29,807 nt of DNA, from NCBI GenBank assembly GCA_002269645.1, contig NIVC01004970.1:1-29807 (forward strand), written 5' to 3'. The translations under genes and the position numbers were made by a program. The first letter of the stretch is position 1. Every line of letters begins with the position of its first letter. Positions 6,948 to 29,807 of the stretch are shown here, one piece after another. This DNA is from Macrostomum lignano. Its lineage: Eukaryota. Below the pieces are notes generated by a model that saw only the letters and a program-made list of their open reading frames with translations, was not told the origin of the DNA and ran no database searches.

Positions 6948-7100
6948 TTCTAGAGAGGAGAAGAAAGGGCAGATGAAGGGATAGATGAGAGACGGAAGAG
7001 GAGAGGGGAGAGGTGGGGATTGACGAGAGAGGCGAGATGAGAGATGAGAGGGGAGATAAGGGGAGAGGAGAGAAGGGAGATGAGACCCGGAGGAGGGGAG
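6948..7100. repeat. Purine-rich (GA) low-complexity tract
   Basis: gagaggagaagaaagggcagatgaagggatagatgagagacggaagaggagagggg... Confidence 0.8.
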
Positions 7101-7129
7101 AGAGGATTGCTATTGTGAAGTTTCAAAGG

Positions 7130-7200
7130 ACCCGAGGCCCGCGGATAGAGAGGCTTCGCGGGCGGCATGTGACCCGAGGGCCGGAGTTTTCCGACCACTG
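7130..7200. mobile_element. Probable solo terminus of a hAT (Charlie-type) MITE
   Basis: gcgggcggcatgtgacccgagggccggagttttccgaccactg resembles the GCGGGCCGCATG(T/C)GGCCCGCGGGCCG...CCCCTG right end of Charlie-like elements. I found no matching left end in the window. Confidence 0.45.
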
Positions 7201-7724
7201 ATCTACCTGAAACTGACAGCTAAAAGACTCAAGATGTCAGGTCGGTTCCCTAGTTCGAAATCCGATTCCTTCGAAAGAGCTGGTTTGGGTTAGGACCTTA
7301 GCTGCTCGTCACACATCTTCGCTACCTTGGGGGCTGGCCATTCCCATCAGCTACTTACTCAATCTCGCTCTGCTGTTCATTCTGGATGCGTCTTATTCTG
7401 AGTAGCGCAATATTCTAAAGAAAAACACGTGGAGACTTTTTTGCTTGCCGATGGCTTTCTGCCAATGTAATTAGAGAAACTCTTCAGTGATACGCTTAGA
7501 CGAGACAAGTGGCTTCAGTTCTTTAAACGAGAAATAAGGCGGTAGAGCTCGGTATTGCAGTGCTGGCTATGGTGACACGACAAACTTCAACTTTAACTTC
7601 TAGAGTAAGTAAAAAGAACAAAGAGCAAAGTGAGCAAAGTGCATGTGCAGTCTTAAAACTTCTAAAATTCTTAATTTTTACTGTCTGATTTTTTCGTAGG
7701 ATTCAAGAAGCCATTTACGTCGCA

Positions 7725-8429
7725 TCAGTACACCTTGACGAACTTGGTCCAGTTTGGGTCGGTCTCGATGGCGTCGCCGACGCTCGAGTCAGCGAAGTCC
7801 AGCATGCGGCAGGCGCCGCTGGCCCGGTTGAACAGGACGGCCCGGCACTCCCAGCGCTGCACGCAGAGCCACAGGCAGTAAAGCTCCGAGCTCACCGAGG
7901 CGTCAGTGTAGCAGTAGACAGGACTGATGTTGCCCAGCCTCAGGAACTCAACTGGCTCCAGGTATTCGCTGTTCGGCGTCGCGATTGGCTGGCAGACGAA
8001 TGTTTTGTCATGTTTCCCGGGTCTGTCTCGTAAACCAGCAATGCTGACCGCTACAAAGTCATCGTCATTTGAACCCCTGTTCGGCAAGCCAGACATCCAG
8101 TCGCTGTCATCCAAAGTCGGAAACAGCGAGCCGTTGGCGAATCTCCAGCCGCTGCGGGACGTGCCCGCCTCAACCAGGAGGTCCGTCACTCCGATGTAGT
8201 AAAAGTCAATCCAGTGATTGACGGCTCGGATGGCAGTCAGGTTCATCAGCAGCTCTCCGCCGATGCCCAGGCACAGTCTGGCTGCGTCGCACCAGCTGGA
8301 AACGCTGGGGTTGTTGCCGATGAAGACGCAGCTGCCCAGCCTGTCGATGAACGGAGCGACGCAGGTGGCAGAGGCGATGGCTGCCAGCCCCGCAAACAGC
8401 GTCAGCTTGAGCAGCTGCTTCGGTGGCAT
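7725..8429 (-). CDS. Secreted C-type lectin-like domain + PAN/Apple domain protein, copy 2 (234 aa, intronless)
   Basis: Signal peptide MPPKQLLKLTLFAGLAAIASA. CTLD motifs WCDAARLC, YYIGVTD, GWRF, W.SGLPN, FVCQ. PAN/Apple pattern C-x3-C (CLWLC)...CRAVLFN...CRML. The start at 8429 matches the other copies; the ORF-track ATG at 8495 lies only ~23 nt below the TATA-like box. Confidence 0.9.
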   Translation of the reverse strand: MPPKQLLKLTLFAGLAAIASATCVAPFIDRLGSCVFIGNNPSVSSWCDAARLCLGIGGELLMNLTAIRAVNHWIDFYYIGVTDLLVEAGTSRSGWRFANGSLFPTLDDSDWMSGLPNRGSNDDDFVAVSIAGLRDRPGKHDKTFVCQPIATPNSEYLEPVEFLRLGNISPVYCYTDASVSSELYCLWLCVQRWECRAVLFNRASGACRMLDFADSSVGDAIETDPNWTKFVKVY

Positions 8430-8517
8430 CAGTGAGTCGAATTTGTGCGGCTTGGCTGTCAACTGGTTGTTTTTCTGAGAAATTAGAGTCCCCATCTAGT
8501 GAGTCTGTGCGCTTGCA

Positions 8518-8596
8518 TTCATAGAGAGCTACAGCCAATGACTTTTAGCCAACCAATCGAGCCCGTTGCAGCAGTGCCGACTTGGAGACTGGCTTT
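8518..8596 (-). promoter_or_regulatory. Core promoter of lectin copy 2 (TATGAA variant TATA + two CCAAT boxes)
   Basis: TATGAA on the minus strand at 8518-8523; CCAAT at 8535-8539 and 8553-8557; aligns with 674-750. Confidence 0.55.
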
Positions 8597-9329
8597 CAAT
8601 GATGCTAAAAAACTTTTGCAGCATCCTCGACTCGACACATAGCTTTTGAACAAGAAAATAAAATAATTTTTTTGATTTAATTGAGCCCGGAATTTCGTTG
8701 AAGACTGATAAAATACGAAGTGAAGCAAGTCCAGAAAAGTGTGAACGACTAAAAACAAAACTTGCAAAGTGGGGCAGCGGTCCAGGTTCGATTCCAAGTG
8801 CACCAATGCAGTCACATTAATTTGGGGCTAAATTGGAATCTCTGCTTGGGTCTGCTCGTGCAATTAACGGCCTGGAGGACCAACTCCCAAGGCACAGTGA
8901 AGTGTACAAACCTAACGATAAATAAAGTTAGGGCCGATGTACACTCCTGTGAGTGTGTGCCTGTGCGTATGACTGCGTACGTATCCGCGCGCCTGTGTGC
9001 TGCTCAGGGGAGTCGGCGGAATGGGCAGCAATGCCTCTCGCCGGTTGTGTGACAATGTCGCTTAAAGTGCGCCAGGGTGCACACAGGTCCCCTGACTCCA
9101 ATAAAAGATTACGCAAGGGACGAGAACATGACATTATGTTTTCCAACTCTCAGTCGGACGCACTGCAGGGTCCGGTGTTGCGGTTTTCAGTTGTTGCTGA
9201 GAAAGATGAACAATAATGTTGATTACGTCACACACTTTGCAATGACTCTGGACTCATCCCGCTGGATTAGTTAGTCTAAACTCATTCGAAAGGACATGAT
9301 GGGCAAATACCCAGCAACATCGCAAAGTC

Positions 9330-10260
9330 GCCATCACAGAAGATTGCGTCTGTGGTCGCCACTATTGAGAGTGCAGGTCTATAAAGTCTCTCAATCTTGC
9401 GAGTGACGCAACTTAGCTACGCCGCGGCAGACTTCTTTTTCGAGGATATTGGCATCAAATTGGGCGCCATGCTAGCGCATTCATGAATGAAAAAATAGTT
9501 TTCATTAAGGCACTCTATAGTTTGCATTGCGTTGCAAGTTCAGCAGCTGGGATCAGGTGCACAGAAGTGCAGCGTCAATTTCGCAATAAACATTGCCTCC
9601 TCAATTGTTTCAGCTTCATTGCAAGCAGCTGCACACAAATTAATTTGTCACTTGCGCCTACTGTGAATTGGTAAGTAAAAGTATACTCAGCAACAGCCGA
9701 GCCCCTCAGATTGCCCCTCAAGAATGTGTCTTTTTCGAAGCTCTCATTCAACAGAGTTCTTCGATTGGACTTGAGTTCTCTCTCAGTATTCGAGAAACGA
9801 GAGAGATGCAAAGAAACTGAGGAGTTTTCTCTACGAAGTCGATCGTCACTCGTCGACCAGCTGCGGAGCAGATAAGAAAGCACTCGACAAGAAGTCTCTT
9901 CACTTTCTTGTCTCTTGCCACAATGCCTATAGCTTAAGTTGTTCAGAATATGGAAACTTTCTAAAAAATTAGCTGGCAAACAGCAGTGAGTTGATGCCAA
10001 TCAATCCAGTTCATGCAGTCAGTTTGTTTTTGTCTCGCTCAGTCAACTGAAAGTCTTTTCGACACTCAACATTGAAACCAACTCCTACTAGTATGACAAG
10101 AGGCAAGCCTCTCTGCTTGCTTTGTAAAAGCAATCGAAGTAGCTTTCCCAGAGTCCAGACACTGATCAATTCAGCTTTTGGGACAGAGTGGTTCAAACTT
10201 TCCATTTTCGACAAGACTGTTGGTCCGTGTGCAGTGTTGTTTGACACTTTTACCCTTTGC
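9330..10260 (-). mobile_element. Heavily decayed hAT (ZMYM1/THAP12-type) transposase remnant
   Basis: Minus-strand fragments across stops and frameshifts: KFEPLCPKS* (cf. LKPLCPTRW), TGLIGINSLLFAS..SEQL..ALWQET..DFLSSA (cf. SEQLS..LQ...DL.SA), and RLYRPALSIVATT (cf. dimerisation-domain L.IP.TT). A homologous copy lies at 14705-15165. Confidence 0.5.
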
Positions 10261-10301
10261 CTCACTCACGCCTAAACTACCTTTCCTGGATGTCAATCAT
10301 T

Positions 10302-10337
10302 TAGGGGTTGTCGCCATGGATCTCGAGGGGGGGGGGG
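10302..10337 (+). mobile_element. G-run-containing putative DNA-transposon terminus, shared with 15169-15204
   Basis: TAGGGGTTGTCGCCATGGA...GGGGGGGGGGG vs TAGGGCGTCGTCATGGA...GGGGGGGGGG; resembles G-rich ends of some metazoan hAT-like elements. Confidence 0.4.
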
Positions 10338-10404
10338 TACTTGCTATTTGAGAGAGAGCGGTACTAGCTACATGTATCTACATGTATGGGATTCTTTCTA
10401 TCCA

Positions 10405-10740
10405 GGGATGCTTGCTATCTGCAGGATGCTTGCTATCTGGGGGATGCTTGCTATCTGGGGGATGCTTGCTATCTGGGGGATGCTTGCTATCTGCAGAATG
10501 CTTGCTATCTGGGGGATGCTCGCTATCTGCAGGATGCTTGCTATCTGGGGGATGCTCGCTATCTGCAGGATGCTTGCTATCTGGGGGATGCTCGCTATCT
10601 GCAGGATGCTTGCTATCTAGGGGATGATTGCTATGTGGGGGGATGCTTGCTATTTGGGGGGGTGCTTGCTATCTGTGGATGATTGCTATGTGGGGGGATG
10701 CTTGCTACCTGGGGAGATGCTTGCTTTCCTGGGGATGTTT
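10405..10740. repeat. 18-bp minisatellite, ~18 copies (GGATGCTTGCTATCTGSR)
   Basis: Direct reading; it explains the MLAIWG/MLAICR ORFs. Confidence 0.95.
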
Positions 10741-11651
10741 TCTATTTAAGGGAAAGTCTGTTATCTTTGTAAAAACTTTTTTGTCGTCTTTGTAAATTTT
10801 AGAAAAAAAGATATTCATAGGAAGCATCTTTGTCCATGAAAATTTTACTCGAATAAGGTGATTTATAAAACTGAAGAAGGAATTGGTTCTTAAGAAAATT
10901 GTCTTTTTAATGGATTTGCATGAATAATTTTCGCTCCCTGCTTCGGGCGCCCCGAATGGGGCACTGGATTGCTAGTCTACAAAACTAAATTACTACATGT
11001 AAAATACTTTGAGAATTGGTTACTAGCCCTCATTTTGGCGCCGCTGGCATTTATTGTGGCGCAGAAAGCACTATATTTTGGCGCCCCGAAGCAAAATTAT
11101 TGATTTCCATAACGGATCACAGGGTGGAGCGAGGGGACAAAGCACTGGCATGTCCGACCATAGCTTTTACAGGTTGCCTGCGTCACGACTCGCAACTGCA
11201 TTAAGTACATATATAATATGCATTTGTAGTGACCAATTGCGACCACCAACCTACTTGGGTTCAGAAACCGTTCAATAAGGGTTTACGAGCTTTCGGCGAA
11301 CAACTGAGACGAGTCCTTGCATGGTCACATGATCATCTGGATCTGATGGTGTGAGACGAACCTCTGAAAGCATCCCAAGAGACCAAATGCGCATTGAGAA
11401 AAGCCATCAGGAGCTACCTGAAATGTTAGAAATTTGCTAAGTTAAAAGGCCAACGAAGGCATCTTAGATTCACTGCAAAACCTAATTTAAAAAATTACAT
11501 TCTATGCGCAGTTTACTACTTACGAGTAAAGATAGTCGTGTGCACGTGTAAATTTTTACTTTACCTAAAGTTGACAGCTAAAATATGTTACTTTACTACT
11601 GGGCTCGTTCTTGGCCCCACCACATGCAATTACTGTGCGCGAGTCATCACA

Positions 11652-13819: not shown

Positions 13820-14524
13820 TCAATACACCTTGACAAACTTGGCCCAGCTCGGGTCGGTCTCGATGGCGTCGCCGACGCTTGAGTCAGCGAAGTCCAGCAT
13901 GCGGCAGGCGCCGCTGGCCCGGTTGAACAGGACAGCCCGGCACTCCCAGCGCTGCACGCAGAGCCACAGGCAGTAAAGCTCCGAGCTCACCGAGGCGTCA
14001 GTGTAGCAGTAGACAGGACTGATGTTGCCCAGCCTCAGGAACTCCGCTCGCTCCAGGTATTTGCTGTTCGGGGTCGCTATCGGCTGGCAGACAAATTTTT
14101 TGTCCTGATTCGGGGGTCTGTCTACCAAGCCCGCTTTGCTGACCCCTACAAAGTCATCGTCTTCCGAAAGGCGGTTCGGCAAGCCAGACTTCCAGTTGCT
14201 GTCATCCAAAGTCGGAAACAGCGAGCCGTTGGCGAATCTCCAGCCGGTGCGAGACCTGCTCGCCTCAACCAGGAGGTCCGTCACTCCGATGAAGTAATAA
14301 TCAATCCAGTGATTGACAGCTCGGATGGCAGTCAGGTCCATCAGCAGCTCTCCGCCGATGCCCAGGCACAGTCTGGCTGCGTCGCACCAGCTGGAAACGC
14401 TGGGGTTGTCGCCGATGTAGACGCAGCTGCCCAGCCTGTCGATGAACGGAGCGACGCAGGCGGCAGAGACGATGGCTGCCAGCCCCGCAAACAGCGTCAG
14501 CTTGAGCAGCTGCTTCGGTAGCAT
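13820..14524 (-). CDS. Secreted C-type lectin-like domain + PAN/Apple domain protein, copy 3 (234 aa, intronless)
   Basis: Intact ORF MLPKQLLKLTLFAGLAAIVSA...FVKVY with the same architecture as copy 2. Confidence 0.92.
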   Translation of the reverse strand: MLPKQLLKLTLFAGLAAIVSAACVAPFIDRLGSCVYIGDNPSVSSWCDAARLCLGIGGELLMDLTAIRAVNHWIDYYFIGVTDLLVEASRSRTGWRFANGSLFPTLDDSNWKSGLPNRLSEDDDFVGVSKAGLVDRPPNQDKKFVCQPIATPNSKYLERAEFLRLGNISPVYCYTDASVSSELYCLWLCVQRWECRAVLFNRASGACRMLDFADSSVGDAIETDPSWAKFVKVY

Positions 14525-14628
14525 CAGCGAGTCTCAAGTCGGTCAATTTGGAGCGGCGTAACTTGTGAGCAATTTGAAATTTGCTTGGTTGCCAACTAGT
14601 GGTTTAATTTCTCGTCCGTACGCTTGCA

Positions 14629-14692
14629 TTTATAGACAGCTGCAGCCAATGGCTTGTAGCCAACCAACCATCCAGTGCAGCAGCGTCGACTT
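14629..14692 (-). promoter_or_regulatory. Core promoter of lectin copy 3 (TATA + CCAAT)
   Basis: TATAAA on the minus strand at 14629-14634; CCAAT at 14646-14650; the second CCAAT is degenerate. Confidence 0.6.
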
Positions 14693-14704
14693 CAGGGGTT
14701 GAAT

Positions 14705-15165
14705 TGTGAAACAAGAAAGACGTAAAGAAACTGAAGAATTTTCCCTCAGGCGTCGATCATCAGCTAAACAACTGGTTTGCTTATATAGATAAAACAGCAT
14801 TTGACAATAAAATATCTGGTAACTTTCTCAGTCGGTTTTAATTGATTGGCACTTAATAACATAATGAAACAATTGAAGGAATAATTTTTTTTCGCAAATA
14901 GAGAGAGTTAAAGTCAATCAATCGATCTCGAACAGCCTTTGTCTTCTTGCTTTTGTCCCGATCAAGTCTACTGAGAGTCGTGTCAACATTGCCGAGTTGA
15001 AACCAGCTCCACTTAGTCTTACAAGACAGAAGCTTTTCTGCTTGCTTTGCTGAACCAACCAAAGTGGTTTACCAGACTCTATTCAGCCTTTTGTGTCAGA
15101 CTGGTTCAAACTTGACATTTTCGACAGGACTTATCAGTCTGTTAGCAGTTTTGTGACCTAGCTTT
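14705..15165 (-). mobile_element. Second copy of the decayed hAT transposase remnant, co-duplicated with the lectin gene
   Basis: Alignable by eye to ~9800-10260 (e.g. ggttcaaactt..cattttcgaca.gact; ttgaaacca.ctcc). Confidence 0.5.
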
Positions 15166-16352
15166 AGCTAGGGCGTCGTCATGGATTTTATTGTGGGGGG
15201 GGGGTAAAGCCAAGAGTTGTTCTATATGACTAGAAATTCAGCTGTTTGAGACGCAGCTGAGGCCTGCAGCTGACAGATAGCCGCCTTGCCCACATGATAC
15301 TGCACCCTGACTTTTTCCTCGTACGTAAAGCGATTTTAAACTGCTGCGGAAGCTGACTGACGCTTTTGATGAAGCACTGGAGGGAGCCTTGCATGATCAT
15401 CAAGGAGCTAGGGATCTTATGGTGCGTAGGGATCAAGCCTAAAAGGATCAAGAATATTTTGGACAATCTTCACTAACTTTTGTACCGATCTTGTCAGTCT
15501 ACACCACTGCTATTAGTTTGAGAGGATGAGGCGATGTGCCTTTTAATTAATAAATAATTATCTATTAAATATTAGCTGAGTTACAAGGCTAAAGAAGGCA
15601 TCTTAAATTCGCTATCAAAGCCTAATTTCTATAATTAAATTCTATGCGCAGTTTACTACTTATGAGTAGAACTGGTGGAGTGCAGTGTAATCTACGAGCG
15701 TTTGGTCACAGCTAAATTACGTGGGTATATTGACCGAAGATCTGAGCTGTGCATTTGCGTCCATATGGTATGAAAGCGTTAATTCTTTAGCCCTTTACTC
15801 AAACCATTTCACACTCATACCAGTCATTCTTCTTTTTGTACACGATCTGATACTGTCGTCTCCTGAGCAGAAAGCTGGAATGAAGTTGAGTCCAATTTTA
15901 TGCGATAGAGAATTACACTCATAAATACCCTGCCGCGCTGCCAATGCTTATCTGTGGCAAAGAAAAATAATTCTTTTTCTACAAAGCAAAGTACATTTCT
16001 CTTCGTCTATAGAGCACATTATTAAAGTTAGAGGGACTGAAGTTAGAGAAAATACCCTGAGACCGTAGTTCATTATTTCGTTCCACAGTATAAAGTCTTT
16101 CTTGAAGTTTTTAACATACACGTTAGGCGTGAGCATTGGGAAAGATCAGGATTTTATGATTTTATGATAAGCGGTTAAAAAAGTGGTATTAACAACCAAC
16201 GCTACTGATGTTGAAGTGGTGCTCCACCAAATGTTTTATAGTTAGACAGCTAAAGCACTGACGTTTTAGTGAATAAATTCCGAAAATTAGGAATCGATAA
16301 GCTTTAATAGTGCCGGTCAACTCTGCTGTCAAAATCTTCAGAAACTAGGACA

Positions 16353-19300
16353 CTAGCTATCTGAACCACTGGCCTTAACCAGCATTTCAATCTTCAGCTG
16401 TAGCCAATCGGGCACATCATCAAGCACTCTTGTGATTCGCCTGCGCAACAGTCGCAGCAGCTGCAGATCATCTCCGCAGATCGATGCAGCCACCACCAGT
16501 TCCTGTTGGTCCGCATCCGTTCTCATTGCAACATCCCGGACCCACTGCTGCCCTACGGCATCAGTTTTGCCAGCCAATTCAAAGTGAATGGCCTGCAGCA
16601 GGGCATCGAAGTTCATGTAATAAAAGTTGGCATAGTTCTCCAGCGTCAGAGGAAACAGATTGTCGACATAATTGGTTAAAAATGAGAAGCTCAGTTTCTC
16701 GTAGAATAGAAAACAGTATTGCCAAGCGGAGTCTCGGCTCGTCAGGTGTTGCCAAACAAAGTCGGTCGTTGCTTCACTCGCCGAAGCCCCAGAGGGCCAG
16801 TCGATGCCTCTACTCACACCGATTGCTCTGCAGTCTCTCACAACTTGAGTAGCAGCCTCTCGATCGCCTGACCTGATGAGGGCCATAGCTCGGAGCGACT
16901 CTCTAGTCGATCTAGCGCAGTCTGGCAGCTTGTCAATCAGTTCATCAAGGTATTCTTGCGCCTCCGAGTTGTAGTATTCATCAGAGAGGCAAACCAAAGC
17001 CGCTTTGACGACATCGTAGATCTCGTGAAACTCACACTCGACAGTCTCAGATTCTTCAGATGCTTCTGAAGAGCTTTCCAATAGACTGGGAAGCACGAGG
17101 AACGGATGGAAGTGAAATCGGCCCGAGTCAGTGACGGGTTGCAGATTGTCAATGAACTGCACAAGAAGCTGAGGCAGATTCGACATGGTGTCTCTCAGAG
17201 CATCGGCTGCGGCATTCAAGGATTCGCCAACCTTCTCGGATGAGCTGATGTCAACGCCTCGCAGGTACACTGAACCATCGCTCAGAAAGAAGTGGTCCAT
17301 GATTCGACCGTCAGTACTGTCCAATTGGTGGGCGCTCTCAACACAGTCAATTAGCATTTGCAGTGAGCGTCTTGTGAGAGTCACGAGGTTCGTCTGATCC
17401 CATTCTTCCGGTGGTGTCTCCTCCACCATTCGAAATGTAAGCGTCTTGGCGTGATAAGACTTAAAGCCATTGTGACGGACGGCCTTTTTTAATAGCCACT
17501 TGAGAATGACAAACAATTGGCCCTGCAGAGTACTGAGACTCCGCAGTAGCCGTTTCTCCAGGAAGCTGGTGCTTACACGGAGCTGCTCCCCGCCTTTCCG
17601 GGAGGAGCTGCGTGCACCACGTGACAAGGTGACGAATCCGAAGTTAGGTCCTGCTGGAGCAACTTCAGCACGGGCTCAGCGATGTTAGACTTGAAGACTC
17701 GGTCTTTGTGCAGCGGCGCGATAGGCGGATAGCAACACAGAAGGCGGGCGAGGACTTCGTCGAAAGCTGGTCTTAGCGTGGAGCCGAGCCACGCGGTCGA
17801 TGGACTCGACGCTGCAATTTTTTCAGGCCAATGAGCGCTATTCATGAAAATTAAACGGGCTAGCAACAAATCGTTAATTTTAGGACTAAATGCTGTCTTA
17901 CCGAATCCAGGGCTCAAAACGTGGCCGTTTTTATATTCCACAGTCTGCACGGCGCCGCACTCGCACAGACCTGTTGGATGCAGCAGCGGTCCTTGCACCA
18001 ACTGCATCATGTCAATATCTGACTCGGTGTCAGTTTTACCGTTTAGAGTTTTCAGACTGTTGCCCCAGCCTTCGGAGAAGCTGCCTACCACGAAGTATCC
18101 GTCGTGAGTCTGCCTTCTGCGTAGAATGTCTTGCAGAACGTCAGCCACAGCGCTCTGCAATGCGGCTCTGGAGTCTACGAACCCAGATTGAGAGAGCGCA
18201 GAGTGCAGCTGTTGGCTCAGTTCTGAGTCGCAAGTTGCCGGTCTTCTGAAAGACGAACGAAGCAATATCGAGTTCACAATAAATATTAAATCATGGGCAA
18301 GCACGCTAACCTTTGTGCGATTGAGCCGTTATCGGCTGGCAAAGAATCGCCAATACTAAGCGCTAGCTGGAGCAAATTGACCACGCGGCTGTTGCCGAAT
18401 TCCTGAGCACATCGTAGAGCAGTTTGGATCGAGTCCAGCTTGCACTGGAGAATGGACTCACGGACTAGCAACTCAGCCACTTCGTAGCGGCCGTTTTGCG
18501 ATGCAATGTAGAGAGGCGTCTTGCCTGTCTTAGCTTGAACATTGATGTCAGCTAGCGCTTTAATAAGTAATTCGACAGTCTTCAGGTGGCCACGGCACGA
18601 TGCGATGTAGACAGGCGTGCGACCATCGGCTTGCTGATGATTGACATCGACTCGAGCTCTAAGCAGCGATTCGAGCACTCCGGGATGGCCTTGCTGCGAC
18701 GCGATGTACAGCGGCGACTCGCCACCGAATTTTCTAATCGCGACATCGGCCTGGGCTTTAAGTAGCGAGTTCACAATCTTATGGTGCCCCCCATTTGAGG
18801 CTACGTAGAGAGGCGCTCGGCCACTTTGTTGCTGGAGATCAACGTTGGCTTGCGCTTTGATGAGCAGGTCAACCACCGATTGATGGCCCTCTAGCGATGC
18901 GATATAGAGAGGCGTCTCGCCCGAGTTCCGTTGAATATCAATGCTGGCTTGCGCTTGTAGAAGTGAATTAACAACTTTTGCATGGCCGTTGCTCGCTGCA
19001 ATGTAGAGCGGCGAGTATCCATCCTCATCTTTAAAGTTGATATCCACCAGAGTCTGCACAAGAAAGTCTACCACTTTGTGATGCCCGTTATGAGAAGCAG
19101 CGTACAGAGGCGAGGTTCCGTCATCTGCAAGAATATTAACGTCGGCTTGCGCTTCGATGAGTAAACGAACAACCTTGTGGTGACCGTTTTGCGATGCGAT
19201 GTATACGGATGAGCAGCCGTCTTGTAGTTCTTGTAGATTGACGTCAGCTCCTGCTTTGAGTAGCAAATCGACAACCTCGTAGTGGTCGTTCTGTGATGCA

Positions 19301-19854
19301 ATATAGAGTGGCGATTCGCCTGTGTTCCTTGGAAGGTTGACATCGGCTCGGGCATCGATGAGTGAGCTCACCACACGGAGGTGTCCTTCCTGAGATGCTA
19401 TGTAGAGAGGGGAGCAGCCAAGGACCGGCTCGCGAGCATTGACATCGGCCTGCGCTTTGATAAGCGACTTGACCACCTTGTCATGTCCGTTTAGACACGC
19501 TATGTAGAGAGGGGAGCAGCCATTTCCTTCCAGAAGATTGACATCGGCTCCAGCTTCGATAAGTGAATCGACAATCTCGTGATGGCCTTGATGCGATGCG
19601 AGGCAAATCGCACTATCGCCTGCCTGATTTTGCCTATTGATTTCTACTTTGGCTTGAATTAGCAGCAAAACAATGCCCTTGCTTCCGTAGTAGGAGGCCA
19701 CCATTGCTGGGGTTGCTTTAGCAGACAACGCATCGAAATCGATGACATCCTCGGCAAGACTTCTCTTGGTGGCTAAAATTCCCTGGAACGCTTTGGTATC
19801 GTCGCCTTGAATGGCCGCTAGCAGCTGTTCGTCAGTGGGCGCAAGGGAGCTCAT
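16353..19854 (-). CDS. Ankyrin-repeat (~14) + Mab-21/cGAS-like (cGLR) nucleotidyltransferase + helical C-terminal domain; exons 19854-18311, 18245-17902, 17811-16353; one 1-nt frameshift at 17588-17591; ~1115 aa
   Basis: Ankyrin consensus [ST]PLYIAS..GH..VV..LL...ADVN repeated. NTase motifs GSFSEG...SDID...RPAFD(EV). Mab-21 C-lobe motifs HVV, LRVSTSFLEKRLL, ILKWLLK, FKSYHAKT, EETPPEEW, MDHFF. Both predicted GT-AG introns preserve the frame. Confidence 0.88.
17812..17901 (-). other. 90-nt stop-free, in-frame intron inside the cGLR domain
   Basis: Donor TTCG|GTAAGA; acceptor AATTGCAG|CG; AT-rich interior. Splicing gives SPGF-A-SSPSTAWLGSTLRPAFD. Confidence 0.7.
18246..18310 (-). other. 65-nt intron joining the ankyrin ORF to the cGLR ORF
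   Basis: Donor CAAAG|GTTAGC; acceptor TTCGTTCGTCTTTCAG|AAGA. The phase-2 junction gives ...SIAQ-R-RPATCDSEL in frame and removes the ankyrin ORF stop codon. Confidence 0.85.
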
Positions 19855-21432
19855 GAATAAAAATTCTCTCTAGAGTGAACAATATTCTTTACACGAACTT
19901 TCAAGAAGTTTTTAGAAGGCTTCTATTTTGCATAGCCTTTAATTATAGCAACTCTGGCTTTCTCGTAGGGCGATTTTCATTGGCGCTTAATTACCAAGTT
20001 CTTTAACAATGCAATAATATAAGGTTTCGTCCTGACGTGCAAAATAATGCTATGCTACTCTCAGTAACTTCTAACGCTTCAAGATTGAGTCTTCGAAAAG
20101 AAGTATTGATAAATGTATTATGCATACAAACAAATACAGACCATCAGAGCATGACAAGTTTCATAGTGCGGTGATGGCAACACCAAAGTTTCACTAAAGC
20201 AATTGGATCTTATAAGATTTTTTTCCGGTCAAATAGCGAAATAGCAAACTCGAGTGCAAATCAAGGACGACTCTCCTTGAGTAAGTCTTCTCCTTGCTCG
20301 CGTACATGCGTACATATCAGTCGCTGCTTGTCCCCAGCGTATATCCTGGCTTGTGTGGCAGTCATTTTTCCTCAAGAACATTAAAAATGTGAGGGGTGAG
20401 GAGGGATTGGGAAGAGCTGAGGGCAAAGATTGGATTAATTGAAGGGCTTCCGCCCGGTGTTCATTGTTTTCTCAAGCATTTTTTTAAATATCCAAATGGT
20501 TGGTTAGGTGATAGATGCTGGTCGAAAGACACTGCATGCTCACTGGGTCTGGGGCAAAGGGTGGCGACTTTTCGATGTTGCTGAGTATAACTGTTGAGTT
20601 GGCTTTGTTGGATTTAGAAGCGCTCCAACTGGCTAATTCATATCAGATACTTGATTTTATGCACTTACGAGCCCGTAAGATAGCTATGGAGTTGGATAGT
20701 ATGCTACTTGACCAGAAAATCTATAATACACCTTTTCACTTTCAGTTTTAAAAAATACCTGCAACAAATATTAATTTTCAGGCATCCGATTCTGACAATT
20801 TTTGGTTGTGACAGCTTCGGGTTTCAACCAAGTTGCGACTGAGAATCGACATTTTGCATACACTTTCGACAAAAAGTCAAACAGTTCTAACAACTGCCAA
20901 CTTATTCAGTCAAGTGAAGTACACTTGAATAGTCATTTTTGGACACTCCAATATGAGCAGCCCGAGATTATATTACCTGAACAGATGGTTAAGATGTTCT
21001 TTAACTCTGGCTAACCCAGACTTGGCTGAGGGCTTTAACGATCGAAGAGTAAGGTTTTAACTCTCTTTACAGAAAATTTGTAAAAGAACAAAATATAAAT
21101 GCTCAATTGAGCAAAGGTCAAATATATTAATTATTGAAAAAGACTGCAGCAACACAGGACCTAGCATGGCGTGAGAACGACTGCCTCAGTTTGCTTCCCT
21201 GAAAGGTGAAATTATGCAAAATGACATGAATAAATGCTTCGTTGCGTGACAAAGAATCGTCGAAAAATATGAAAAAGTAAAAAAAAACTCTAAAAAAACA
21301 GGAAAAGGCATTGCAGAAATACGAAATTTCTGTCGGATATGATAAAAAACACAATAAAATATTTTTGGGCACTTTTAGCGCTTGAGGCTACAATATTCAT
21401 TGAATTTAACGTATTTTAATGAGACTTCATGA

Positions 21433-22262
21433 CTGTCAGCACTGGGGTTCAGTGAGTTGTTAATCAAGGGCCGTCTGCACTGGGGTTCAGTGAGGTGTCA
21501 ATCAAGGGCTGTCTGCACTGGGGTTCTGTGAGGTGTCAATCAAGGGCTGTCTGCACTGGGGTTCAGTGAGATGTCAATCTAGGGCTGTCTGCAATGGGGT
21601 TCAGTGAGGTGCCTGCACTGAGGTTTCAGTGAGGTGTCTGCATTAGGGTTCAGTGAGGTGCCTGCACTGGGGTCCCAGTTAGGTGTCTGCACTGGGGTTT
21701 CAGTGAGGTGCCTGCATTAGGGTTCAGTGAGGTGTCTGCACTGGGGTTTCAGTGAGGTGTCTGCATTCGGGTTCAGTGAGGTGTCTGCACTGGGGTTCAG
21801 TGAGGTGCCTGCACTAGGGTTTCAGTGAGGTGTCTGCATTAGGGTTCAGTGAGGTGCCTGCACTGGGGTTCAGTGAGGTGCCTGCACTGGGGTTTCAGTG
21901 AGGTGTCTGCATTAGGGTTCAGTGAGGTGTCTGCACTGAGGTTCAGTGAGGTGTCTACACTGGGGTTTCAGTGAGGTGCCTGCACTGGGGTTCAGTGAGG
22001 TGTCTACACTGGGGTTCAGTGAGGTGTCTACACTGGGGTTTCAGTGAGGTGTCTGCACTGGGGTTCAGTGAGGTGGCTGCACTGGGGTTCAGTGGTGTCT
22101 GCACTGGGGTTCAGTGAGGTGTCTGCACTGGGGTTCAGTGAGGTGTCTGCACTGGGGTTCAGTGAGGTGTCTGCACTGGGGTTCAGTGAGGTGTCTGCAC
22201 TGGGGTTCAGTGAGGTGTCTGCATTAGGGTTCTGAAGGTGTTTTGAGGGTTCTGAGGTGTCT
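21433..22262. repeat. 24-bp satellite array B, same family and orientation as 2374-4660, ~33 copies
   Basis: Unit CTGCACTGGGGTTCAGTGAGGTGT; the first units carry a 14-bp insert CAATCAAGGGCTGT. Confidence 0.97.
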
Positions 22263-22912
22263 GAATTAGCTTTTTGGTACTTTCTGAATTTGGGCTTAAA
22301 AGTGTATCAATGACTCTGTATTGCGTATCGAGAGCCAGGATAACTGTAAGACAAATAAATATACAGTCTCTTAATCAGCTTTCCAATCCGATCCATTGTT
22401 ATTAGACAAATTTATTGAAGTCATGGCAAATCCCCCATTAACCAGTCACAAACAACAAAAGTTAGTAAGCATTAAAATATGAAAACTATAACGGAGGCAG
22501 CTCTTGCCTAGACTAAGCTACAAAAGACTTATTAAATTTGTTGGAAATAAAATAATTGTTTTTGGCTTCGACGACCCTAAAACAATGTAAGATGTTAAAA
22601 TCAGTATTGAAGTGCATCAGGCTGCTGAATTATATACATAAAATGTGAAAAAGCTTGTAAAAGAACAATATAGGTAGTCGAGTGCATATAGAGTCACGCA
22701 TCGCATATGATTTCTTAACAATGACAGACTAGTAGTCAGTGGAAAAGCAAGGCGTGCATAATTATAGGTATTACACCTGCTGATCCAAATACACCGTTGA
22801 GTGTTTTCCTATTCCGAAAATACTGCCTGCAGGTGATTAAAGAGCTCAACAGCTGTACACTTCCTAGAGTCGAACACGAAGCATCTTATTGCTGCGTAAA
22901 TACGAGTCCACT

Positions 22913-23935
22913 TAGATCCCTACTTTTTGATCCCTATTCACTCACTATGATCCTTACTCTGTCACTATGATCCCTACTCACTCACTATGATCCCTACTCA
23001 CTCACTATGATCCCTACTCTGTCACTATGATCCCTACTCACTCACTATGATCCCTACTCACTCACTATGATCCCTACTCACTCACTATGATCCCTACTCT
23101 GTCACTATGATCCCTACTCACTCACTATGATCCCTACTCTGTCACTATGATCCCTACTCACTCACTATGATCCCTACTCACTCACTATGATCCCTACTCT
23201 GTCACTATGATCCCTACTCACTCACTATGATCCCTACTCACTCACTATGATCCCTACTCTGTCACTATGATCCCTACTCTGTCACTATGATCCCTACTCA
23301 CTCACTATGATCCCTACTCACTCACTATGATCCCTACTCTGTCACTATGATCCCTACTCTGTCACTATGATCCCTACTCACTCACTATGATCCCTACTCA
23401 CTCACTATGATCCCTACTCACTCACTATGATCCCTACTCACTCACTATGATCCCTACTCACTCAATATGATCCCTACTCACTCACTATGATCCCCTACTC
23501 ACTCACTATGATCCCCTACTCATTCACTATGATCCCTACTCACTCACTATGATCCCTACTCACTCACTATGATCCCCTACTCATTCAATATGATCCCTAC
23601 TCACTCACTATGATCCCCTACTCACTCACTATGATCCCCTACTCATTCACTATGATCCCTACTCACTCACTATGATCCCTACTCACTCACTATGATCCCT
23701 ATTCACTCACTATGATCCTTACTCTGTCACTATGATCCCTACTCACTCACTATGATCCCTATTCACTCACTATGATCCTTACTCTGTCACTATGATCCCT
23801 ACTCACTCACTATGATCCCTACTCACTCACTATGATCCCCTACTCATTCAATATGATCCCTACTCACCCACTATGATCCCTACTCACCCACTATGATCCC
23901 TACTCACTCACTATGATCCCTTAAACCTTACTATG
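22913..23935. repeat. 20-bp minisatellite, ~50 copies (TCACTATGATCCCTACTCAC / ...CTCTG)
   Basis: Direct reading; it begins ~25 nt downstream of the oxidoreductase stop codon. Confidence 0.97.
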
Positions 23936-23958
23936 ACCCCAGATTAACCAGGATCCCA

Positions 23959-26900
23959 TCACTCTCCATCCCCAGTCCCGTCCTTGGCGCCATCGGCAGT
24001 GCCCAGCCTTGGCCGAAACGGTTCAGCGTCCATAAACGAACAGGCTCCATCCAACAGCAGGTCGGCCAGCATGAGGCCAGTGGCCGGGCCGTTCAATATG
24101 CCCCAGCAGCTGTGCCCGGCGCCTACGAATCCGTTAGCCAGGCCAGGCAGTTGGCCAATCATAGGCAGTCCAGTGCGCGACACGGGCAGGTAGCAGGCCT
24201 GCCCGGCAACCACAGAATCGGCCGACAGTCGATCCGACACAGACTCGGCAAATTTTGCTAGCCGACGCAGCTTGTTAGAGTCGGCAACTACGTCGGCAGT
24301 TGACGCCGGCAGCGGGGCATCGTCTGCCAGGCCGCAGATGTAGATGGTGCCGTCTGGCCTGGGATAGAGCTCGGGCGACTCCCCGCCCTCCTGCTCGGTG
24401 TACAGAGCGTGCGGACTAAGCTGTCCGGCCGGGGCAGACAGTACAACCGAATGGGCCCGATGCCCGAACACGGCGTCGGAGCCTCCGGCAAGATTTAGCC
24501 AATTGCCCAGAGCTGTGGAAGTCCACGGGCCCATGGCGAATACGATTTTAGCTGAGCGGCAGTCTATTGTAGTTGTAGCAGCAGCAGTGTCGGTTTTATC
24601 GGTTGATGACGAAGCAGTTGTCGCAGTTGAAACGGCTGCATCGGCGACGTCCTCCACTGTCAGGCTGACAATGCGACCGTCTGCTACCTGAGCACCGGTG
24701 ACTCGGGCGCGGCGGACCCGGCTGCCGGCCAGAGCGGCGGCTCGGGCGACCAGGCCGGTGGTCAGTTTGTACGGGTGCACCTGGTTGGGATGGGGGAGAG
24801 CGTAGAGTAAGATGTAGAGTAAATGGAAGGGTGAGATGTAGAGTGGACAGTGGGTGAGATGCAGTGTGTACAGTAGAGTGAGATGTAGAGAGTGGAATAG
24901 TAGGGTGAGATGTAGAGTGGATAGTAGGGTGCGATGTAGGGTGGATAGAAGGGTGAGATATAGGGTAGATAATAGGGCGAGATGTAAGGTGGATAGTAGG
25001 TGGATAGTAGGGTGGATAGTAGGGTGAGATGTAGGGTGGATAGTAGGGTGAGATGTAGGGTGGATAGTAGGGTGAGATGTAGGGTGGATAGTAGGGTGAG
25101 ATGTAGAGTGGATAGAGGGTGAGATATATAGTGTATGAAAGAATGAGATAGACAGCAATACAGAGTCTACAAGCTTGCAGACATTTGAACAGTGCTCACT
25201 AAAAGAAAGGAACTCAGAGAGAAGTTTCTTTCCCAACAGGCAGGGATGAACATGTACAGAGCGGACAGTGTTCGAATAATCTATGCAGAGGATTAGACCA
25301 GAAAGCAGGAGCGCAGCAAAGCTGATTGATTTTTATCCTCTTACAATCCGGAAAAATCCCCCAACCCTAGCTCTCGAAGTCCTTCCCCGTGCTGCCATCC
25401 CATCTCCCTGCCCTAGCCGCATTTCCCTACTCGAAACTTCGAGCAGAATCGATGGGGCGGCACAGACTATCGAAAGATACATCAACGGAGGAAAAATTGG
25501 ATGGGAGCTTACACTGCTGGCCTAGACTCAAAGGAATTAGGTCGATGGGAGGAGATGGACGGCTTAAGCAAGCGATGTGTTGGGTTAGAAACTTTTTTAT
25601 TAGCTGCTCAGATCGGCCAGACAGTTGGCTACAAAAACAACTGAAATTTCTCTCTAAGGATGGAATCCGCAAGCTGCCTGCACCGAATTTTAACATGCTT
25701 TGCTTTAAAGAAATTCACACAGACTGAAGTAGGCTAAGACCGCATCAATTAGACAAATTAGTTGAAAGTTATTTACTTCCTGAAAATTTCAACCATTTGC
25801 AAATACGTAGACCAGATTGTTCATTAAATAGTTTCAGAGACAGACCACAGGCAGATAAGACACAAAGACCAGGGATAGATGAAGACACAAAGACCAGAGA
25901 CAAGTCAAGACACAAAGACCAGAGACAAGTCAAGACACAAAGATGAAGACACAAAGACCAGAGACAAATCAAGACACAAAGACCAGAGACAAATCAAAAC
26001 ACAAAGACCAAAGACAAGACAAATCAAGACACAAAGACCAGAGACAAGACAAATCAAGACACAAAGACCAGGGACAAGACAAATCAAAACACAAAGACCA
26101 GAGACAAGACAAATCAAGACACATAGACCAGGGACAAGACAAATCAAAACACAAAGACCAGAGACAAGACAAATCAAGACACAAAGACCAGGGACAAGAC
26201 AAATCAAAACACAAAGACCAGAGACAAGACAAATCAAGACACAAAGACCAGAGACAAGACAAATCAAGACACAAAGACCAGGGACAAGACAAATCAAAAC
26301 ACAAAGACCAGAGACAAGACAAATCAAGACACAAAGACCAGGGACAAGACAAATCAAAACACAAAGACCAGAGACAAGACAAATCAAGACACAAAGACCA
26401 GAGACAAGACAAATCAAGACACAAAGACCAGGGACAAGACAAATCAAAACACAAAGACCAGGGACAAGACAAATCAAAACACAAAGACCAGAGACAAGAC
26501 AAATCAAGACACAAAGACCAGGGACAAGACAAATCAAGACACAAAGACCAGAGACAAGACAAATCAAAACACAAAGACCAGAGACAAGACAAATCAAGAC
26601 ACAAAGACCAGGGACAAGACAAATCAAGACACAAAGACCAGAGACAAGACAAATCAAAACACAAAGACCAGAGACAAGACAAATCAAGACACAAAGACCA
26701 GGGACAAGACAAATCAAAACACAAAGACCAGAGACAAGACAAATCAAGACACAAAGACCAGGGACAAGACAAATCAAAACACAAAGACCAGGGACAAGAC
26801 AAATCAAAACACAAAGACCAGAGACAAGACAAATCAAGACACAAAGACCAGAGACAAGACAAATCAAGACACAAAGACCAGGGACAAGACAAATCAAGAC

Positions 26901-27517
26901 ACAAAGACAGGGACAAGACAAATCAAAACACAAAGACCAGAGACAAGACAAATCAAGACACAAAGACCAGGGACAAGACAAATCAAAACACAAAGACCAG
27001 AGACAAGACAAATCAAGACACAAAGACCAGGGACAAGACAAATCAAGACACAAAGACCACACAGATGGAGCCAAAAGCTAGAAAAGTGCCGCACCTGGGC
27101 GGTATTGTTGGGATCTCCCAGCCTGCAGGCCCTAGTAACCTCGGCCGTGACCCAGTCCGGACAGCCGGTAATGGGTCGGCCGCATCGAGGCTGCCCGCCA
27201 ACCCGCAGCCGCAGCGACAGAGTGTCCAAGCGTCGATAATCCAATGACTGGCCAAGTTCGCTTTCCAATTCCGAGTGCAAGCGGAAGCTCTCCCAGGCCA
27301 GCTGGGCAAGGGGCCCGCCGGCTCCGCCGCCGCACCAGTCCCGAGCCAGAAACCCGCCAGCCTTGCCGCTGGCGCCGCTAGCAACTCCGACGCTCTCCAG
27401 CAGTAGGCTCCGTACGCCTCGCTTAGCCAGATAATAGGCCGTCGATGAGCCAATTATTCCGCCGCCGACAATGATCACTGGCGGCGTGTCGTTGCCGCTG
27501 TCGCCACTATCAGCCAT
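23959..27517 (-). CDS. TDA3: TDA3/C1F5.03c-like FAD-dependent oxidoreductase (DAO family), 2 exons: 27517-27095 and 24780-23959; 414 aa
   Basis: Rossmann VIIVGGGIIG; ASGASGKAGGFLARDW; the family motif TAQ|VHP is split by a phase-0 GT-AG intron (CAG|GTGCGG ... AACCAG|GTG); YPRPDGTIYICG; ACYLP; GAGHSCWGILNGPATG. Confidence 0.92.
24795..25130. repeat. G-rich 12/24-bp minisatellite in the oxidoreductase intron (GTAGGGTGAGATGTAGGGTGGATA)
   Basis: Direct reading; it produces the false HPTIHPTS extension of ORF 23959..25236. Confidence 0.9.
25850..27065. repeat. 30-bp minisatellite in the oxidoreductase intron (AGACACAAAGACCAGRGACAAGACAAATCA), >35 copies
   Basis: Direct reading; it explains the IKTQRPETRQ and DKSRHKDQ ORFs. 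Confidence 0.97.
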
Positions 27518-27721
27518 GGCTAAACAGCAGGAATGATTGACAAGTGTTCATATTATTATAGTTTGCTAATTCTAATTAAGCTATTATCATATGTACTACT
27601 AGCACTATATGTAACGGTAAAAGAAGTGAGACTGCAGAACACCTGTTAACAATATTATGATAAAAGATTCAATTGGCAGCCAAATAATTGTATTTATTAT
27701 TATACCTTTATTAAGTTCAGA

Positions 27722-28495
27722 CAGACACAAAGACCACAGACAGGTCAAGACACAAAGACCAGACAGGTCAAGACACAAGGACCAAAAGACCACAGATAGG
27801 TCAAGACACAAAGACCACAGACAGGTCAAGACACAAAGACCACAGACAGATCAAGACACAAAGACCAGACAGGTCAAGACACAAGGACCAAAAGACCACA
27901 GATAGGTCAAGACACAAAGACCACAGACAGGTCAAGACACAAAGACCAGACAGGTCAAGACACAAGGACCAAAAGACCACAGATAGGTCAAGACACAAAG
28001 ACCACAGACAGATCAAGACACAAAGACCAGACAGGTCAAGACACAAGGACCAAAAGACCACAGATAGGTCAAGACACAAAGACCACAGACAGGTCAAGAC
28101 ACAAAGACCAGACAGGTCAAGACACAAGGACCAAAAGACCACAGATAGGTCAAGACACAAAGACCACAGACAGGTCAAGACACAAAGACCACAGACAGAT
28201 CAAGACACAAAGACCAGAGGCAGGTCAAGACACAAAGACCATAGACAGATCAAGACACAAAGACCACAGACAGGTCAAGACACAAAGACCACAGACAGAT
28301 CAAGACACAAAGACCACAGATAGGTCAAGACACAAAGACCACAGACAGGTCAAGACACAAAGACCACAGACAGATCAAGACACAAAGACCAGAGGCAGGT
28401 CAAGACACAAAGACCAGAGGCAGGTCAAGACACAAAGACCATAGACATAGGTCAAGACACAAAGACCATAGACATAGGTCAAGACACAAAGACCA
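27722..28495. repeat. GACACAAAGACC-family minisatellite with 25/23/33-bp monomers forming an 81-bp higher-order repeat
   Basis: Monomers GACACAAAGACCACAGACAGGTCAA, GACACAAAGACCAGACAGGTCAA and GACACAAGGACCAAAAGACCACAGATAGGTCAA; a 27-aa periodicity is visible in ORF 27801..28178. Confidence 0.95.
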
Positions 28496-28692
28496 ACTCT
28501 GATAATATTATTAAAACAAGTTAGTTAGCCACATAGCAAAAACTGAATAATTAGACAGACACCCTGTGTTGCTTTAATAAAGAAACATACAAACTGGGAT
28601 TCAGCTTATATAGTCCTACTCAAAAGCTAGTATTGTTGTCAGTTAATAACGGGTTTATGTTCCAACAGTGAAGCAGGGTTATTATAAGCCAA

Positions 28693-29143
28693 TCACTCGG
28701 TATAGTGCTTGACCAGCTTGGCCACCGACCAGTCGCTCTGCAGGAAATGCGGACCGGACACCTGAGCCGGCTTAGCAACTGGCACATTAGCCAATTGGTA
28801 CTGGTTGTAGGCCCGGCAGTCTCGGTAATACAGCACCCGAAGGCAAGCTTCTAAAGCGCTAGTGGCGGTCTCCTCAGTCAGGCCGGCGTAACGCCAGCGG
28901 CATCCAAGGCTTCGCGGAGCAGCCCGAGGCACAGGTGGCTGCCGAATCCGGTTGCTAAGCAGTCTTCTTTAAACGCTACGCCTAGCATGTTCACGTAGCC
29001 TAGAAAAGGCTGCCCAGCCTCTGTCCCGGCCACTATATAAGTGTTCCACAGCGGGTTGATCCTGCTTCGCCGATTGTACATCACCCGGGTTAGCCAGCTG
29101 TGCAGCGAGGCGGGCGAATAAGCGATGCCGTGCTCGTGAATCT
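28693..29143 (-). CDS. PSMB4: Proteasome subunit beta type-4 (beta7), last coding exon; 1-nt frameshift near 28880-28915; earlier exons not seen in the window
   Basis: Acceptor CCCTGTTCCGCGCAG|AG, then IHEHGIAYSPASLHSWLTRVMYNRRSRINPLWNT...LGYVNMLGVAF...ATGFG...LLREAL and, in the next frame, LEACLRVLYYRDCRAYN...SDWSVA. These are diagnostic PSMB4 motifs. Confidence 0.95.
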
Positions 29144-29257
29144 CTGCGCGGAACAGGGGGGGGGGTACTAAGATTGAGCAGGTATGGGATTGGATGCTGT
29201 CCGCTCTGCAACCTGTATATGCTGAATGCAGCCACTTAGCAAATAGAAGAACTTGCC

Positions 29258-29645
29258 TCAGCTTCCCTGCATCCGCCGGTGCCCTAAAATCCTTACCTCC
29301 TCTGCATATCCTAACTTCCGCTGCATCCGCCCCCTGTCCCTACTTCCGCTGCATCCGCCCCCTGTCTCTACTTCCGCTGCATCCGCCCCTGTCCTTACCT
29401 CCGCTGCATCCGCCCCCTGTCCCTACTTCCGCTGCATCCGCCCCCAGTCCTACTTCCGCTGCATCCGCCTCCTGTCCCTACTTCCGCTGCGTCACACCCC
29501 TGTCCCTACTTCCGCTGCATCCACCCCTGTCCCTCCTTCCGCTGCATCCGCTCCTGTCCCTACTTCCGCTGCATCCGCCCCCTGTCCTTACCTCCGCTGC
29601 ATCCGCCCCCAGTCCCTGCCCCCGCTGCATCCGCTCCCAGTCCCT
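29258..29645. repeat. 27/28-bp C-rich minisatellite in the presumed PSMB4 intron (CTTCCGCTGCATCCGCCCCTGTCCCTA)
   Basis: Direct reading; it explains ORF 29253..29735. Confidence 0.92.
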
Positions 29646-29807
29646 GCCTCCTCACATTTCCAGTTCCTACATCCGCGCTCTCTTTCTCATATTTCATGTC
29701 TTCGCTCCGTCCCTCAATTTCCCGGCCCTAAGTGACTCTCAGACACACGATAGCCTCTTCTTCGCCATCTTGTTCCATTACTCTGCCGCTTTCCGCGCAA
29801 GAGGATT

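Follow-up and report, generated by a model that had tools for sequence, protein, structure and literature searches.

The window analysed here is the entire 29,807-nt contig NIVC01004970.1 (positions 1 to 29,807; assembly GCA_002269645.1) from the flatworm Macrostomum lignano. Its minus strand carries, at 16353..19854, the gene Mlig009111, in which an ankyrin (Ank) array and a cGAS/Mab-21-like nucleotidyltransferase (NTase) form one in-frame polypeptide encoded by three exons. The NTase part is referred to below as the cGAS-like receptor (cGLR) domain, and residue numbers such as G54 or D132 count from the start of this part. In the six-frame listing the locus breaks up into three separate open reading frames (ORFs) on the minus strand, at 19854..18286 (522 amino acids, ankyrin-rich), 18304..17573 (243 amino acids, hereafter ORF2) and 17627..16353 (424 amino acids, hereafter ORF3), as a first-pass annotation made from the sequence alone had already recorded; the same annotation had correctly guessed a flatworm origin. 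With two introns taken out and one G put back, the corrected model gives a protein of 1,115 amino acids. The features of the locus are as follows:

16353..19854, minus strand: full extent of the Ank–cGLR gene Mlig009111 between start and stop codons, with its ATG at 19854..19852 and its TAG at 16355..16353; the intact product has 1,115 amino acids.
18311..19854, minus strand: exon 1, 1,544 nt; N-terminus and ankyrin array, with a start that is collinear with the paralogue P0036 from amino acid 2.
18246..18310, minus strand: intron 1, 65 nt, GTTAGC...TTTCAG, phase 2, between the ankyrin array and the cGLR domain.
17902..18245, minus strand: exon 2, 344 nt; spine helices and NTase N-lobe, with G54-S55 at 18085..18080 and D76-I-D78 at 18019..18011.
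17812..17901, minus strand: intron 2, 90 nt, GTAAGA...TTGCAG, phase 1, in frame and stop-free.
16353..17811, minus strand: exon 3; D132 (17761..17759), the remaining NTase core, the Mab-21_C lobe (~17510..17319), the tail (17120..16356) and the stop codon.
17588..17591, minus strand: G-run that is one G short (four Gs here, five in a sister contig and implied by all homologues); frameshift.
17573..17575, minus strand: premature TAA, reached in the shifted frame, which ends the 708-amino-acid product on NIVC01004970.1.
16303..16308, minus strand: candidate polyadenylation signal ATTAAA, ~45 nt past the stop codon, read from the sequence only.

The union of the ankyrin ORF and the Mab-21/cGAS-like ORF depends on intron 1, which the first-pass annotation had placed correctly. 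Its junctions read CAAAG/GTTAGC...TTTCAG/AAGACC, with exact GT and AG borders, and because exon 1 measures 1,544 nt, the intron falls in phase 2 and the downstream exon continues in the frame of ORF2. A counterpart of the same phase, positioned within one residue, is found in the paralogue P0003 (locus L001), and the record's products of 708 and 1,115 amino acids are reproducible only when intron 1 is removed. Expression-derived annotation already backs the fusion transcript, as the GenBank models of the M. lignano assembly come from a genome-guided RNA-seq transcriptome (PMC5730564). Intron 2, in contrast, had been missed at first pass: because it is in frame and holds no stop codon, ORF2 reads straight through it and gains 30 spurious residues (GKTAFSPKIND...PEKIA) that are missing from every homologue. 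Paralogous M. lignano loci carry an intron at the same codon, measuring 114 nt in L001 and ~1.1 kb in locus L002 on contig NIVC01001606.1.

Where does the shorter annotated protein come from? The spliced coding sequence as assembled yields 708 amino acids and stops ahead of the Mab-21 C-lobe, and the product deposited for NIVC01004970.1 at 19854..17573 is this spliced model, cut at the frameshift stop. ORF2 and ORF3 lie in different frames, a break that had also escaped the first-pass annotation. The expected reading across the G-run is GKAG-EQLRVSTSF; homologues run through the site without interruption (...HAAPPGKAGEQLRVSTSF...), and the DNA reads GCG GGG AGC here as compared to GCC GGT GAG or similar in the paralogues. 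A tiny intron bridging the two ORFs was considered and set aside, as the only GT..AG candidates measure 13 and 26 nt and a 1-nt deletion is preferred. On the sister contig NIVC01004011.1, the same gene is called as a 1,115-amino-acid protein. A single extra G in the sister is all that separates the two gene copies over 3,503 nt, and translating the sister copy with the same exon structure gives precisely the corrected model, which is the deposited PAA48938.1 (BOX15_Mlig009111g3, “hypothetical protein”). The single polypeptide of ankyrin array, cGAS-like NTase and helical tail proposed at first pass thus exists as a deposited product.

Over 15.8 kb, the identity between NIVC01004970.1 and NIVC01004011.1 is 99.905%; they differ by one substitution and 14 indels, and because each of these 14 indels is a single-base difference in homopolymer length, the frameshift in NIVC01004970.1 is most likely a consensus error of the assembly. 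The latter was built from PacBio reads with Canu, polished with Pilon and, per its authors, contains substantial redundancy (PMC5730564). Judged from the aligned copies, the gene is most likely intact in the animal, the missing G being an error in the PacBio consensus, and the 708-amino-acid annotation probably reflects a fault in assembling the intact 1,115-amino-acid gene. The duplicated stretch extends over at least 15.8 kb, from 13959 to 29807 of the window, at 99.9% identity on NIVC01004011.1; this pair of contigs illustrates both assembly redundancy and leftover indel errors.

The N-terminal 515 amino acids match the Pfam models Ank_2 (3e-108) and Ank (8e-90), and contain 13 clear repeats of 33–34 residues at amino acids 46–476 (19719..18427), plus capping repeats at the N- and C-terminal ends, in good agreement with the array of ~14 repeats counted at first pass. 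The tail, estimated then at ~250 residues, comprises the last 255 amino acids of the protein; it is conserved within the Macrostomum family and mostly helical in a structural model (predicted local distance difference test, pLDDT, 80). A sequence search of the PDB with the tail returned no match, and a fold search gave nothing significant, the best hits (E 0.17) being a weak TPR-like resemblance to NprR and Rap.

Profile searches accounted for the domain between array and tail only in part. Pfam Mab-21_C scores 25.0–25.4 bits against a cut-off of 24.1 and lies above that cut-off in 10 of 10 family members, as one would expect from the Mab-21/cGAS-like identity assigned at first pass, whereas the Mab-21 NTase model (PF03281) gave no match at E<=1 for the window protein and nine paralogues. 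The link to PF03281 is transitive only, and runs through an alignment (A6) of 26 distant relatives, 24 of which match that model; the named ones include a bivalve, with an annelid as a nearby hit, and some carry TPRs. Aligned to A6 with hhalign, the family profile reaches a probability of 99.9% (E 1e-31) over residues 4–333, pairing GS with GS, SDID with SDxD and PAxDxVxA with DxVxA. The same procedure gave no significant alignment to four coral cGLRs (probability 1.7%), and with five mollusc cGLRs from Table S3 of Li et al. it covered residues 130–322 alone, so that the full-length link needed A6. Searched against PDB sequences, the family profile retrieves cGAS at E ~1e-6, in the C-lobe only. 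Structure prediction speaks more clearly. An AlphaFold (AF2) model of the cGLR domain, built on a 10-sequence family alignment (pLDDT 82; predicted template modelling score, pTM, 0.85), finds its best PDB matches by Foldseek in Sp-cGLR1 (8gjy), MAB21L1 (5eom) and MB21D2 (7lt1), each at probability 1.00, followed by MiD51 (0.99) and the bacterial CD-NTase CdnG (0.96–0.98). Template modelling (TM) scores, taken on target length, are 0.36–0.49 for 8gjy, 5eom, 7lt1 and 7ljn (the last at probability 0.96–0.98). On the strength of the predicted structure, the domain has the cGLR (cGAS-like/Mab-21) fold.

Within this fold, the putative active site appears to be complete. G54, S55, D76, D78 and D132, which belong to the GSFSEG, SDID and RPAFD motifs pointed out by the first-pass annotation, are invariant in 10 of 10 aligned paralogues, down to 30% identity, and all ten share the pattern G[SG]-X20-[DE]h[DE]h-X51-58-h[DE]. 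Li et al. (2023, PMC9980059) define a strict cGLR motif, h[QT]GS-X8-20-[DE]h[DE]h-X50-90-h[DE]h, and a relaxed one, G[S/G] plus [E/D]h[E/D]-X50-90-[E/D]; all ten conform to the latter, in the window protein with G54-S55, X20, D76-I-D78-M, X51 and F-D132. [quoted passage not shown] The arrangement in the predicted model is that of cGAS: one motif element follows strand 1, another opens strand 2 and the third lies where the central strand begins. Such invariance suggests a catalytic set that would be hard to explain without catalytic constraint. The N-lobe contains a further conserved pattern, H-x4-C-x-C-x11-H (H89, C94, C96, H108; 18050-17920, minus strand), which lies between strand 2 and those that follow, is invariant or nearly so across the family and differs in position from the zinc thumb of cGAS; it could constitute a small zinc site.

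By sequence comparison, the gene belongs to an expansion that is specific to Macrostomum, very large, and highly variable in the length of its N-terminal ankyrin regions. All 34 close homologues come from M. lignano, the nearest paralogues found by homology search being 54–61% identical to the window protein. Dozens of collinear full-length paralogues exist, among them P0036 (1,117 amino acids), with 54% identity from end to end. Ahead of the cGLR domain, paralogues carry anything from ~240 to more than 2,000 amino acids. A profile search of 1.84 billion representatives returned 1,107 relatives; 90 clusters (at 50% identity) were found at E<=1e-30, all named ones down to ~1e-17 were from M. 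lignano, and an annelid protein turned up at ~1e-19 and a bivalve one at ~1e-14. At L002, the 871-amino-acid model P0001 (6001-25445 of NIVC01001606.1) spans two tandem Ank–cGLR copies, at ~6001-11161 and 19935-25442, and is an apparent chimera of the Ank exon of the first copy with the cGLR exons of the second; family members are therefore tandemly clustered elsewhere in the M. lignano genome. A further, partial Ank–cGLR copy lies on the opposite strand of the same contig, at 775-1704.

Neither the architecture nor the flatworm family is new. Although the first-pass annotation had implied novelty, ANK-cGLR is a named class in Li et al. 2023, where M. lignano members are listed (PMC9980059), and the protein itself is deposited as PAA48938.1; both fusion and family are already catalogued, and the gene is an uncharacterised member of a published class. 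According to that survey, 87% of cGLRs are stand-alone enzymes, but TPR or ankyrin modules occur in some (Fig 1C, S2A); the entries in the available part of its Table S2 include several M. lignano proteins with Ank_2 domains. The window protein has the ANK-cGLR architecture given there (Fig 1C, Table S2), in that one chain unites its ankyrin repeats with its cGLR domain. Five M. lignano paralogues (PAA86972.1, PAA45980.1, PAA57558.1, PAA93208.1 and PAA68676.1) appear in the available part of Table S3 as cloned for a screen of 140 enzymes. They are paralogues other than the window protein, and share with it GS-x20-DxD...PAxD...LRVSTSF...SYHAKT, an N-terminal Ank_2 and tail motifs such as LPDCA; PAA48938.1 itself was not found in the supplement tables of PMC9980059, as far as these were available.

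Beyond Macrostomum, the closest relatives in sequence are the bivalve and annelid Mab-21/cGLR proteins of A6 (e.g., Sinanodonta woodiana KAL3855470.1). They also bear long helical C-terminal extensions (TPR-like tails), but, unlike the window protein, they lack Ank repeats by Pfam and are matched directly by PF03281; the alignment ends at residue ~333, and their tails find no counterpart in that of the Macrostomum family. The best structural match, Sp-cGLR1 from Stylophora pistillata (8gjy; Foldseek E 1e-4), shares the bilobed NTase with its helical bundle and the G-S/DxD/D set, in line with the relation to cGAS and cGLRs proposed at first pass. In contrast to the window protein, to which it is ~16% identical in sequence, Sp-cGLR1 is a stand-alone enzyme activated by double-stranded RNA (dsRNA) (PMC9980059), and the window protein adds the ankyrin array, the 255-residue tail, a 20-residue GS–DxD loop and an acidic core. 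MAB21L1/2 and MB21D2 (5eom, 7lt1) have the same fold (probability 1.0) and a Mab-21_C domain, yet no repeat domains. Proteins of the MAB21L1/2 type stand alone at ~360 amino acids as compared to a multidomain protein of 1,115, and MAB21L1/2/3 are without a predicted functional active site (PMC9980059), whereas the window protein keeps the full set; on both counts, catalytic residues and domain organisation, it falls outside the MAB21L1/2 type.

What might such a protein do? The corrected gene would encode a cytosolic protein of 1,115 amino acids, consisting of 13–14 ankyrin repeats, a cGLR/Mab-21 NTase and a Macrostomum-specific helical tail of ~255 residues, and we propose that it acts as a pattern-recognition enzyme of innate immunity. 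The enzyme may be kept inactive until the ankyrin array and/or the tail engages a ligand or partner; once activated, it would produce a cyclic di- or oligonucleotide from nucleoside triphosphates by means of its putative Mg-binding Asp triad. The activating ligand would more likely be a protein or another non-nucleic-acid molecule bound by the repeat modules than double-stranded DNA or dsRNA bound by the NTase, because the window protein is acidic, with an isoelectric point (pI) of 5.3 as a whole and 5.9 for its core, family cores ranging from 5.9 to 9.0. The account as a whole (an intact Mlig009111 fusion, a frameshift introduced by error and an innate-immune second-messenger enzyme with a non-nucleic-acid ligand) is in our view rather likely, and the best explanation at hand. 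The mechanistic part, in which the repeat modules either sense the ligand or keep the enzyme switched off, and the Asp triad, upon activation, makes a nucleotide second messenger, is put forward more tentatively.

OAS and RNase L show that an NTase-fold messenger synthase can be paired with an ankyrin module able to bind a nucleotide messenger. In mammals, however, these two functions reside on separate proteins, and the parallel is one of function only; product feedback through the ankyrin array in the manner of RNase L, as entertained at first pass, is speculation by analogy. No gene for STING (TMEM173) or another cyclic-nucleotide receptor was found within the 30-kb window, and the available part of Table S5 in PMC9980059, which has no entry for M. 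lignano, gives 0 cGLR and 0 STING genes for the cestodes it shows.

Several other readings of the locus have to be weighed. Distinct ORFs in the raw six-frame listing would fit two adjoining but separate genes or transcripts, one for the ankyrin repeats and one for the Mab-21 part, yet the in-frame phase-2 intron is kept in paralogues, the transcriptome-derived call is a single 1,115-amino-acid product, and full-length paralogues collinear with it, such as P0036, are numerous; we regard this reading as effectively excluded. The window copy might instead truly be a pseudogene or null allele of very recent origin, in which the run of four Gs is real and only a 708-amino-acid fragment, comprising the ankyrin array and half of the NTase, is expressed. 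The assembled sequence is indeed frameshifted, the record annotates the shorter product, and the DV1 line of M. lignano has extra chromosome copies (PMC5730564), which could leave redundant loci free to decay. A decaying allele is hard to reconcile with zero substitutions in 3.5 kb relative to the intact copy, with contig differences that bear, in all 14 indels, the signature of long-read consensus error, and with 424 codons that are still open downstream, and we consider it improbable. It is in turn very probable that the Ank–cGLR–tail gene at this locus is intact and expressed and belongs, as a member yet to be characterised, to a published class.

Whether its product is an enzyme is less certain. 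A protein of this kind could serve as a non-enzymatic scaffold or adaptor, whose Mab-21 fold binds a nucleotide cofactor or nothing, as in MAB21L1 or MiD51, and which acts through protein–protein contacts of its ankyrin repeats. Both MAB21L1 and MiD51 rank high among its structural matches, and several observations weigh against the second-messenger enzyme favoured here. We know of no enzymatic activity for any member of the M. lignano Ank–cGLR family. The Pfam NTase model does not match directly, and the strict cGLR motif is incomplete, with Val instead of Q/T before GS and Glu after D132; at 20 residues, the GS–DxD spacer is as long as the published motif allows. In its available text, PMC9980059 does not name any of the five M. 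lignano paralogues screened as one of its 15 active enzymes, and shrimp Mab21 proteins are described, in the available part of PMC12928593, as acting outside the nucleic-acid-sensing paradigm. The role of ankyrin array and tail is, moreover, one that we infer. On the other side, the G54, S55, D76, D78 and D132 set does not vary even in paralogues at 30% identity, Li et al. place family members among the cGLRs whose active site is complete, and the same authors put the apparent in vitro inactivity of many cGLRs down to a missing ligand (PMC9980059). The scaffold is thus an unlikely alternative, albeit one with a better claim than the null allele, and a second-messenger enzyme remains our preferred reading.

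The surroundings of the gene are rich in repeats and paralogous copies. At 18-632, 7725-8495 and 13820-14524 (minus strand) lie three paralogous ORFs of 204–256 amino acids that share long identical stretches; two of the three begin with a hydrophobic N-terminal stretch, and two of the three have a PAN/apple match just over the Pfam threshold. These features suggest a tandem array of genes for secreted PAN-domain proteins, upstream of the cGLR gene on the contig, and a look-up of a PAN-domain ORF for an exact protein gave no match. A gene for an FAD-dependent oxidoreductase (DAO family, TDA3-like) at 23959-27517 (minus strand) is 100% identical to BOX15_Mlig007197g1. Between its two DAO-matching ORFs, an array of 30-nt tandem repeats (25882-27059) generates long spurious repeat ORFs on both strands. 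Satellite arrays with units of 20–30 nt occupy 2374-4641, 21433-22232, 5460-6172, 22928-23921, 27723-28495 and 29314-29645, consistent with the reported content of ~15% simple and tandem repeats in the genome, and one 24-nt unit, TGTCTGCACTGGGGTTCAGTGAGG, recurs in two separate arrays that flank the Ank–cGLR gene. At 28878-29144 (minus strand), the record holds an 88-amino-acid fragment with a weak Proteasome-domain match; because the sister contig has a full proteasome subunit gene of 254 amino acids at the corresponding place, the gene in the window has been cut by the contig end or by repeats. Finally, a non-coding segment of ~320 bp at 8775-9086 is 82.6% identical to 1475-1770 of L001, near an unrelated Ank–cGLR paralogue locus, and is probably a dispersed repeat element.

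At the level of this locus, the value of the analysis is the smaller one of a corrected three-exon gene model and an explanation for the 708-amino-acid annotation. The family invites a wider view. To our knowledge, most flatworms are reported to be without immune cGLRs, and ANK-cGLR fusions account for few of the ~3,000 catalogued cGLRs, none of them being known for its ligand, its product or what its repeats do. The Macrostomum Ank–cGLR–tail family, with at least 90 clusters at 50% identity and ankyrin regions of ~240 to more than 2,000 amino acids, might represent a diversified receptor repertoire reminiscent of NLRs, wherein the repeats, rather than the NTase surface, sense protein or other non-nucleic-acid ligands and free an autoinhibited cyclase whose nucleotide product acts through a receptor other than canonical STING. 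We consider this unlikely. If true, it would bring to cGLRs a new logic of ligand recognition, in a phylum where most cGLR signalling is otherwise reported to be gone. M. lignano is a flatworm amenable to transgenesis and RNA interference, and its large ANK-cGLR expansion could make it a practical system in which to learn what repeat-fused cGLRs sense.

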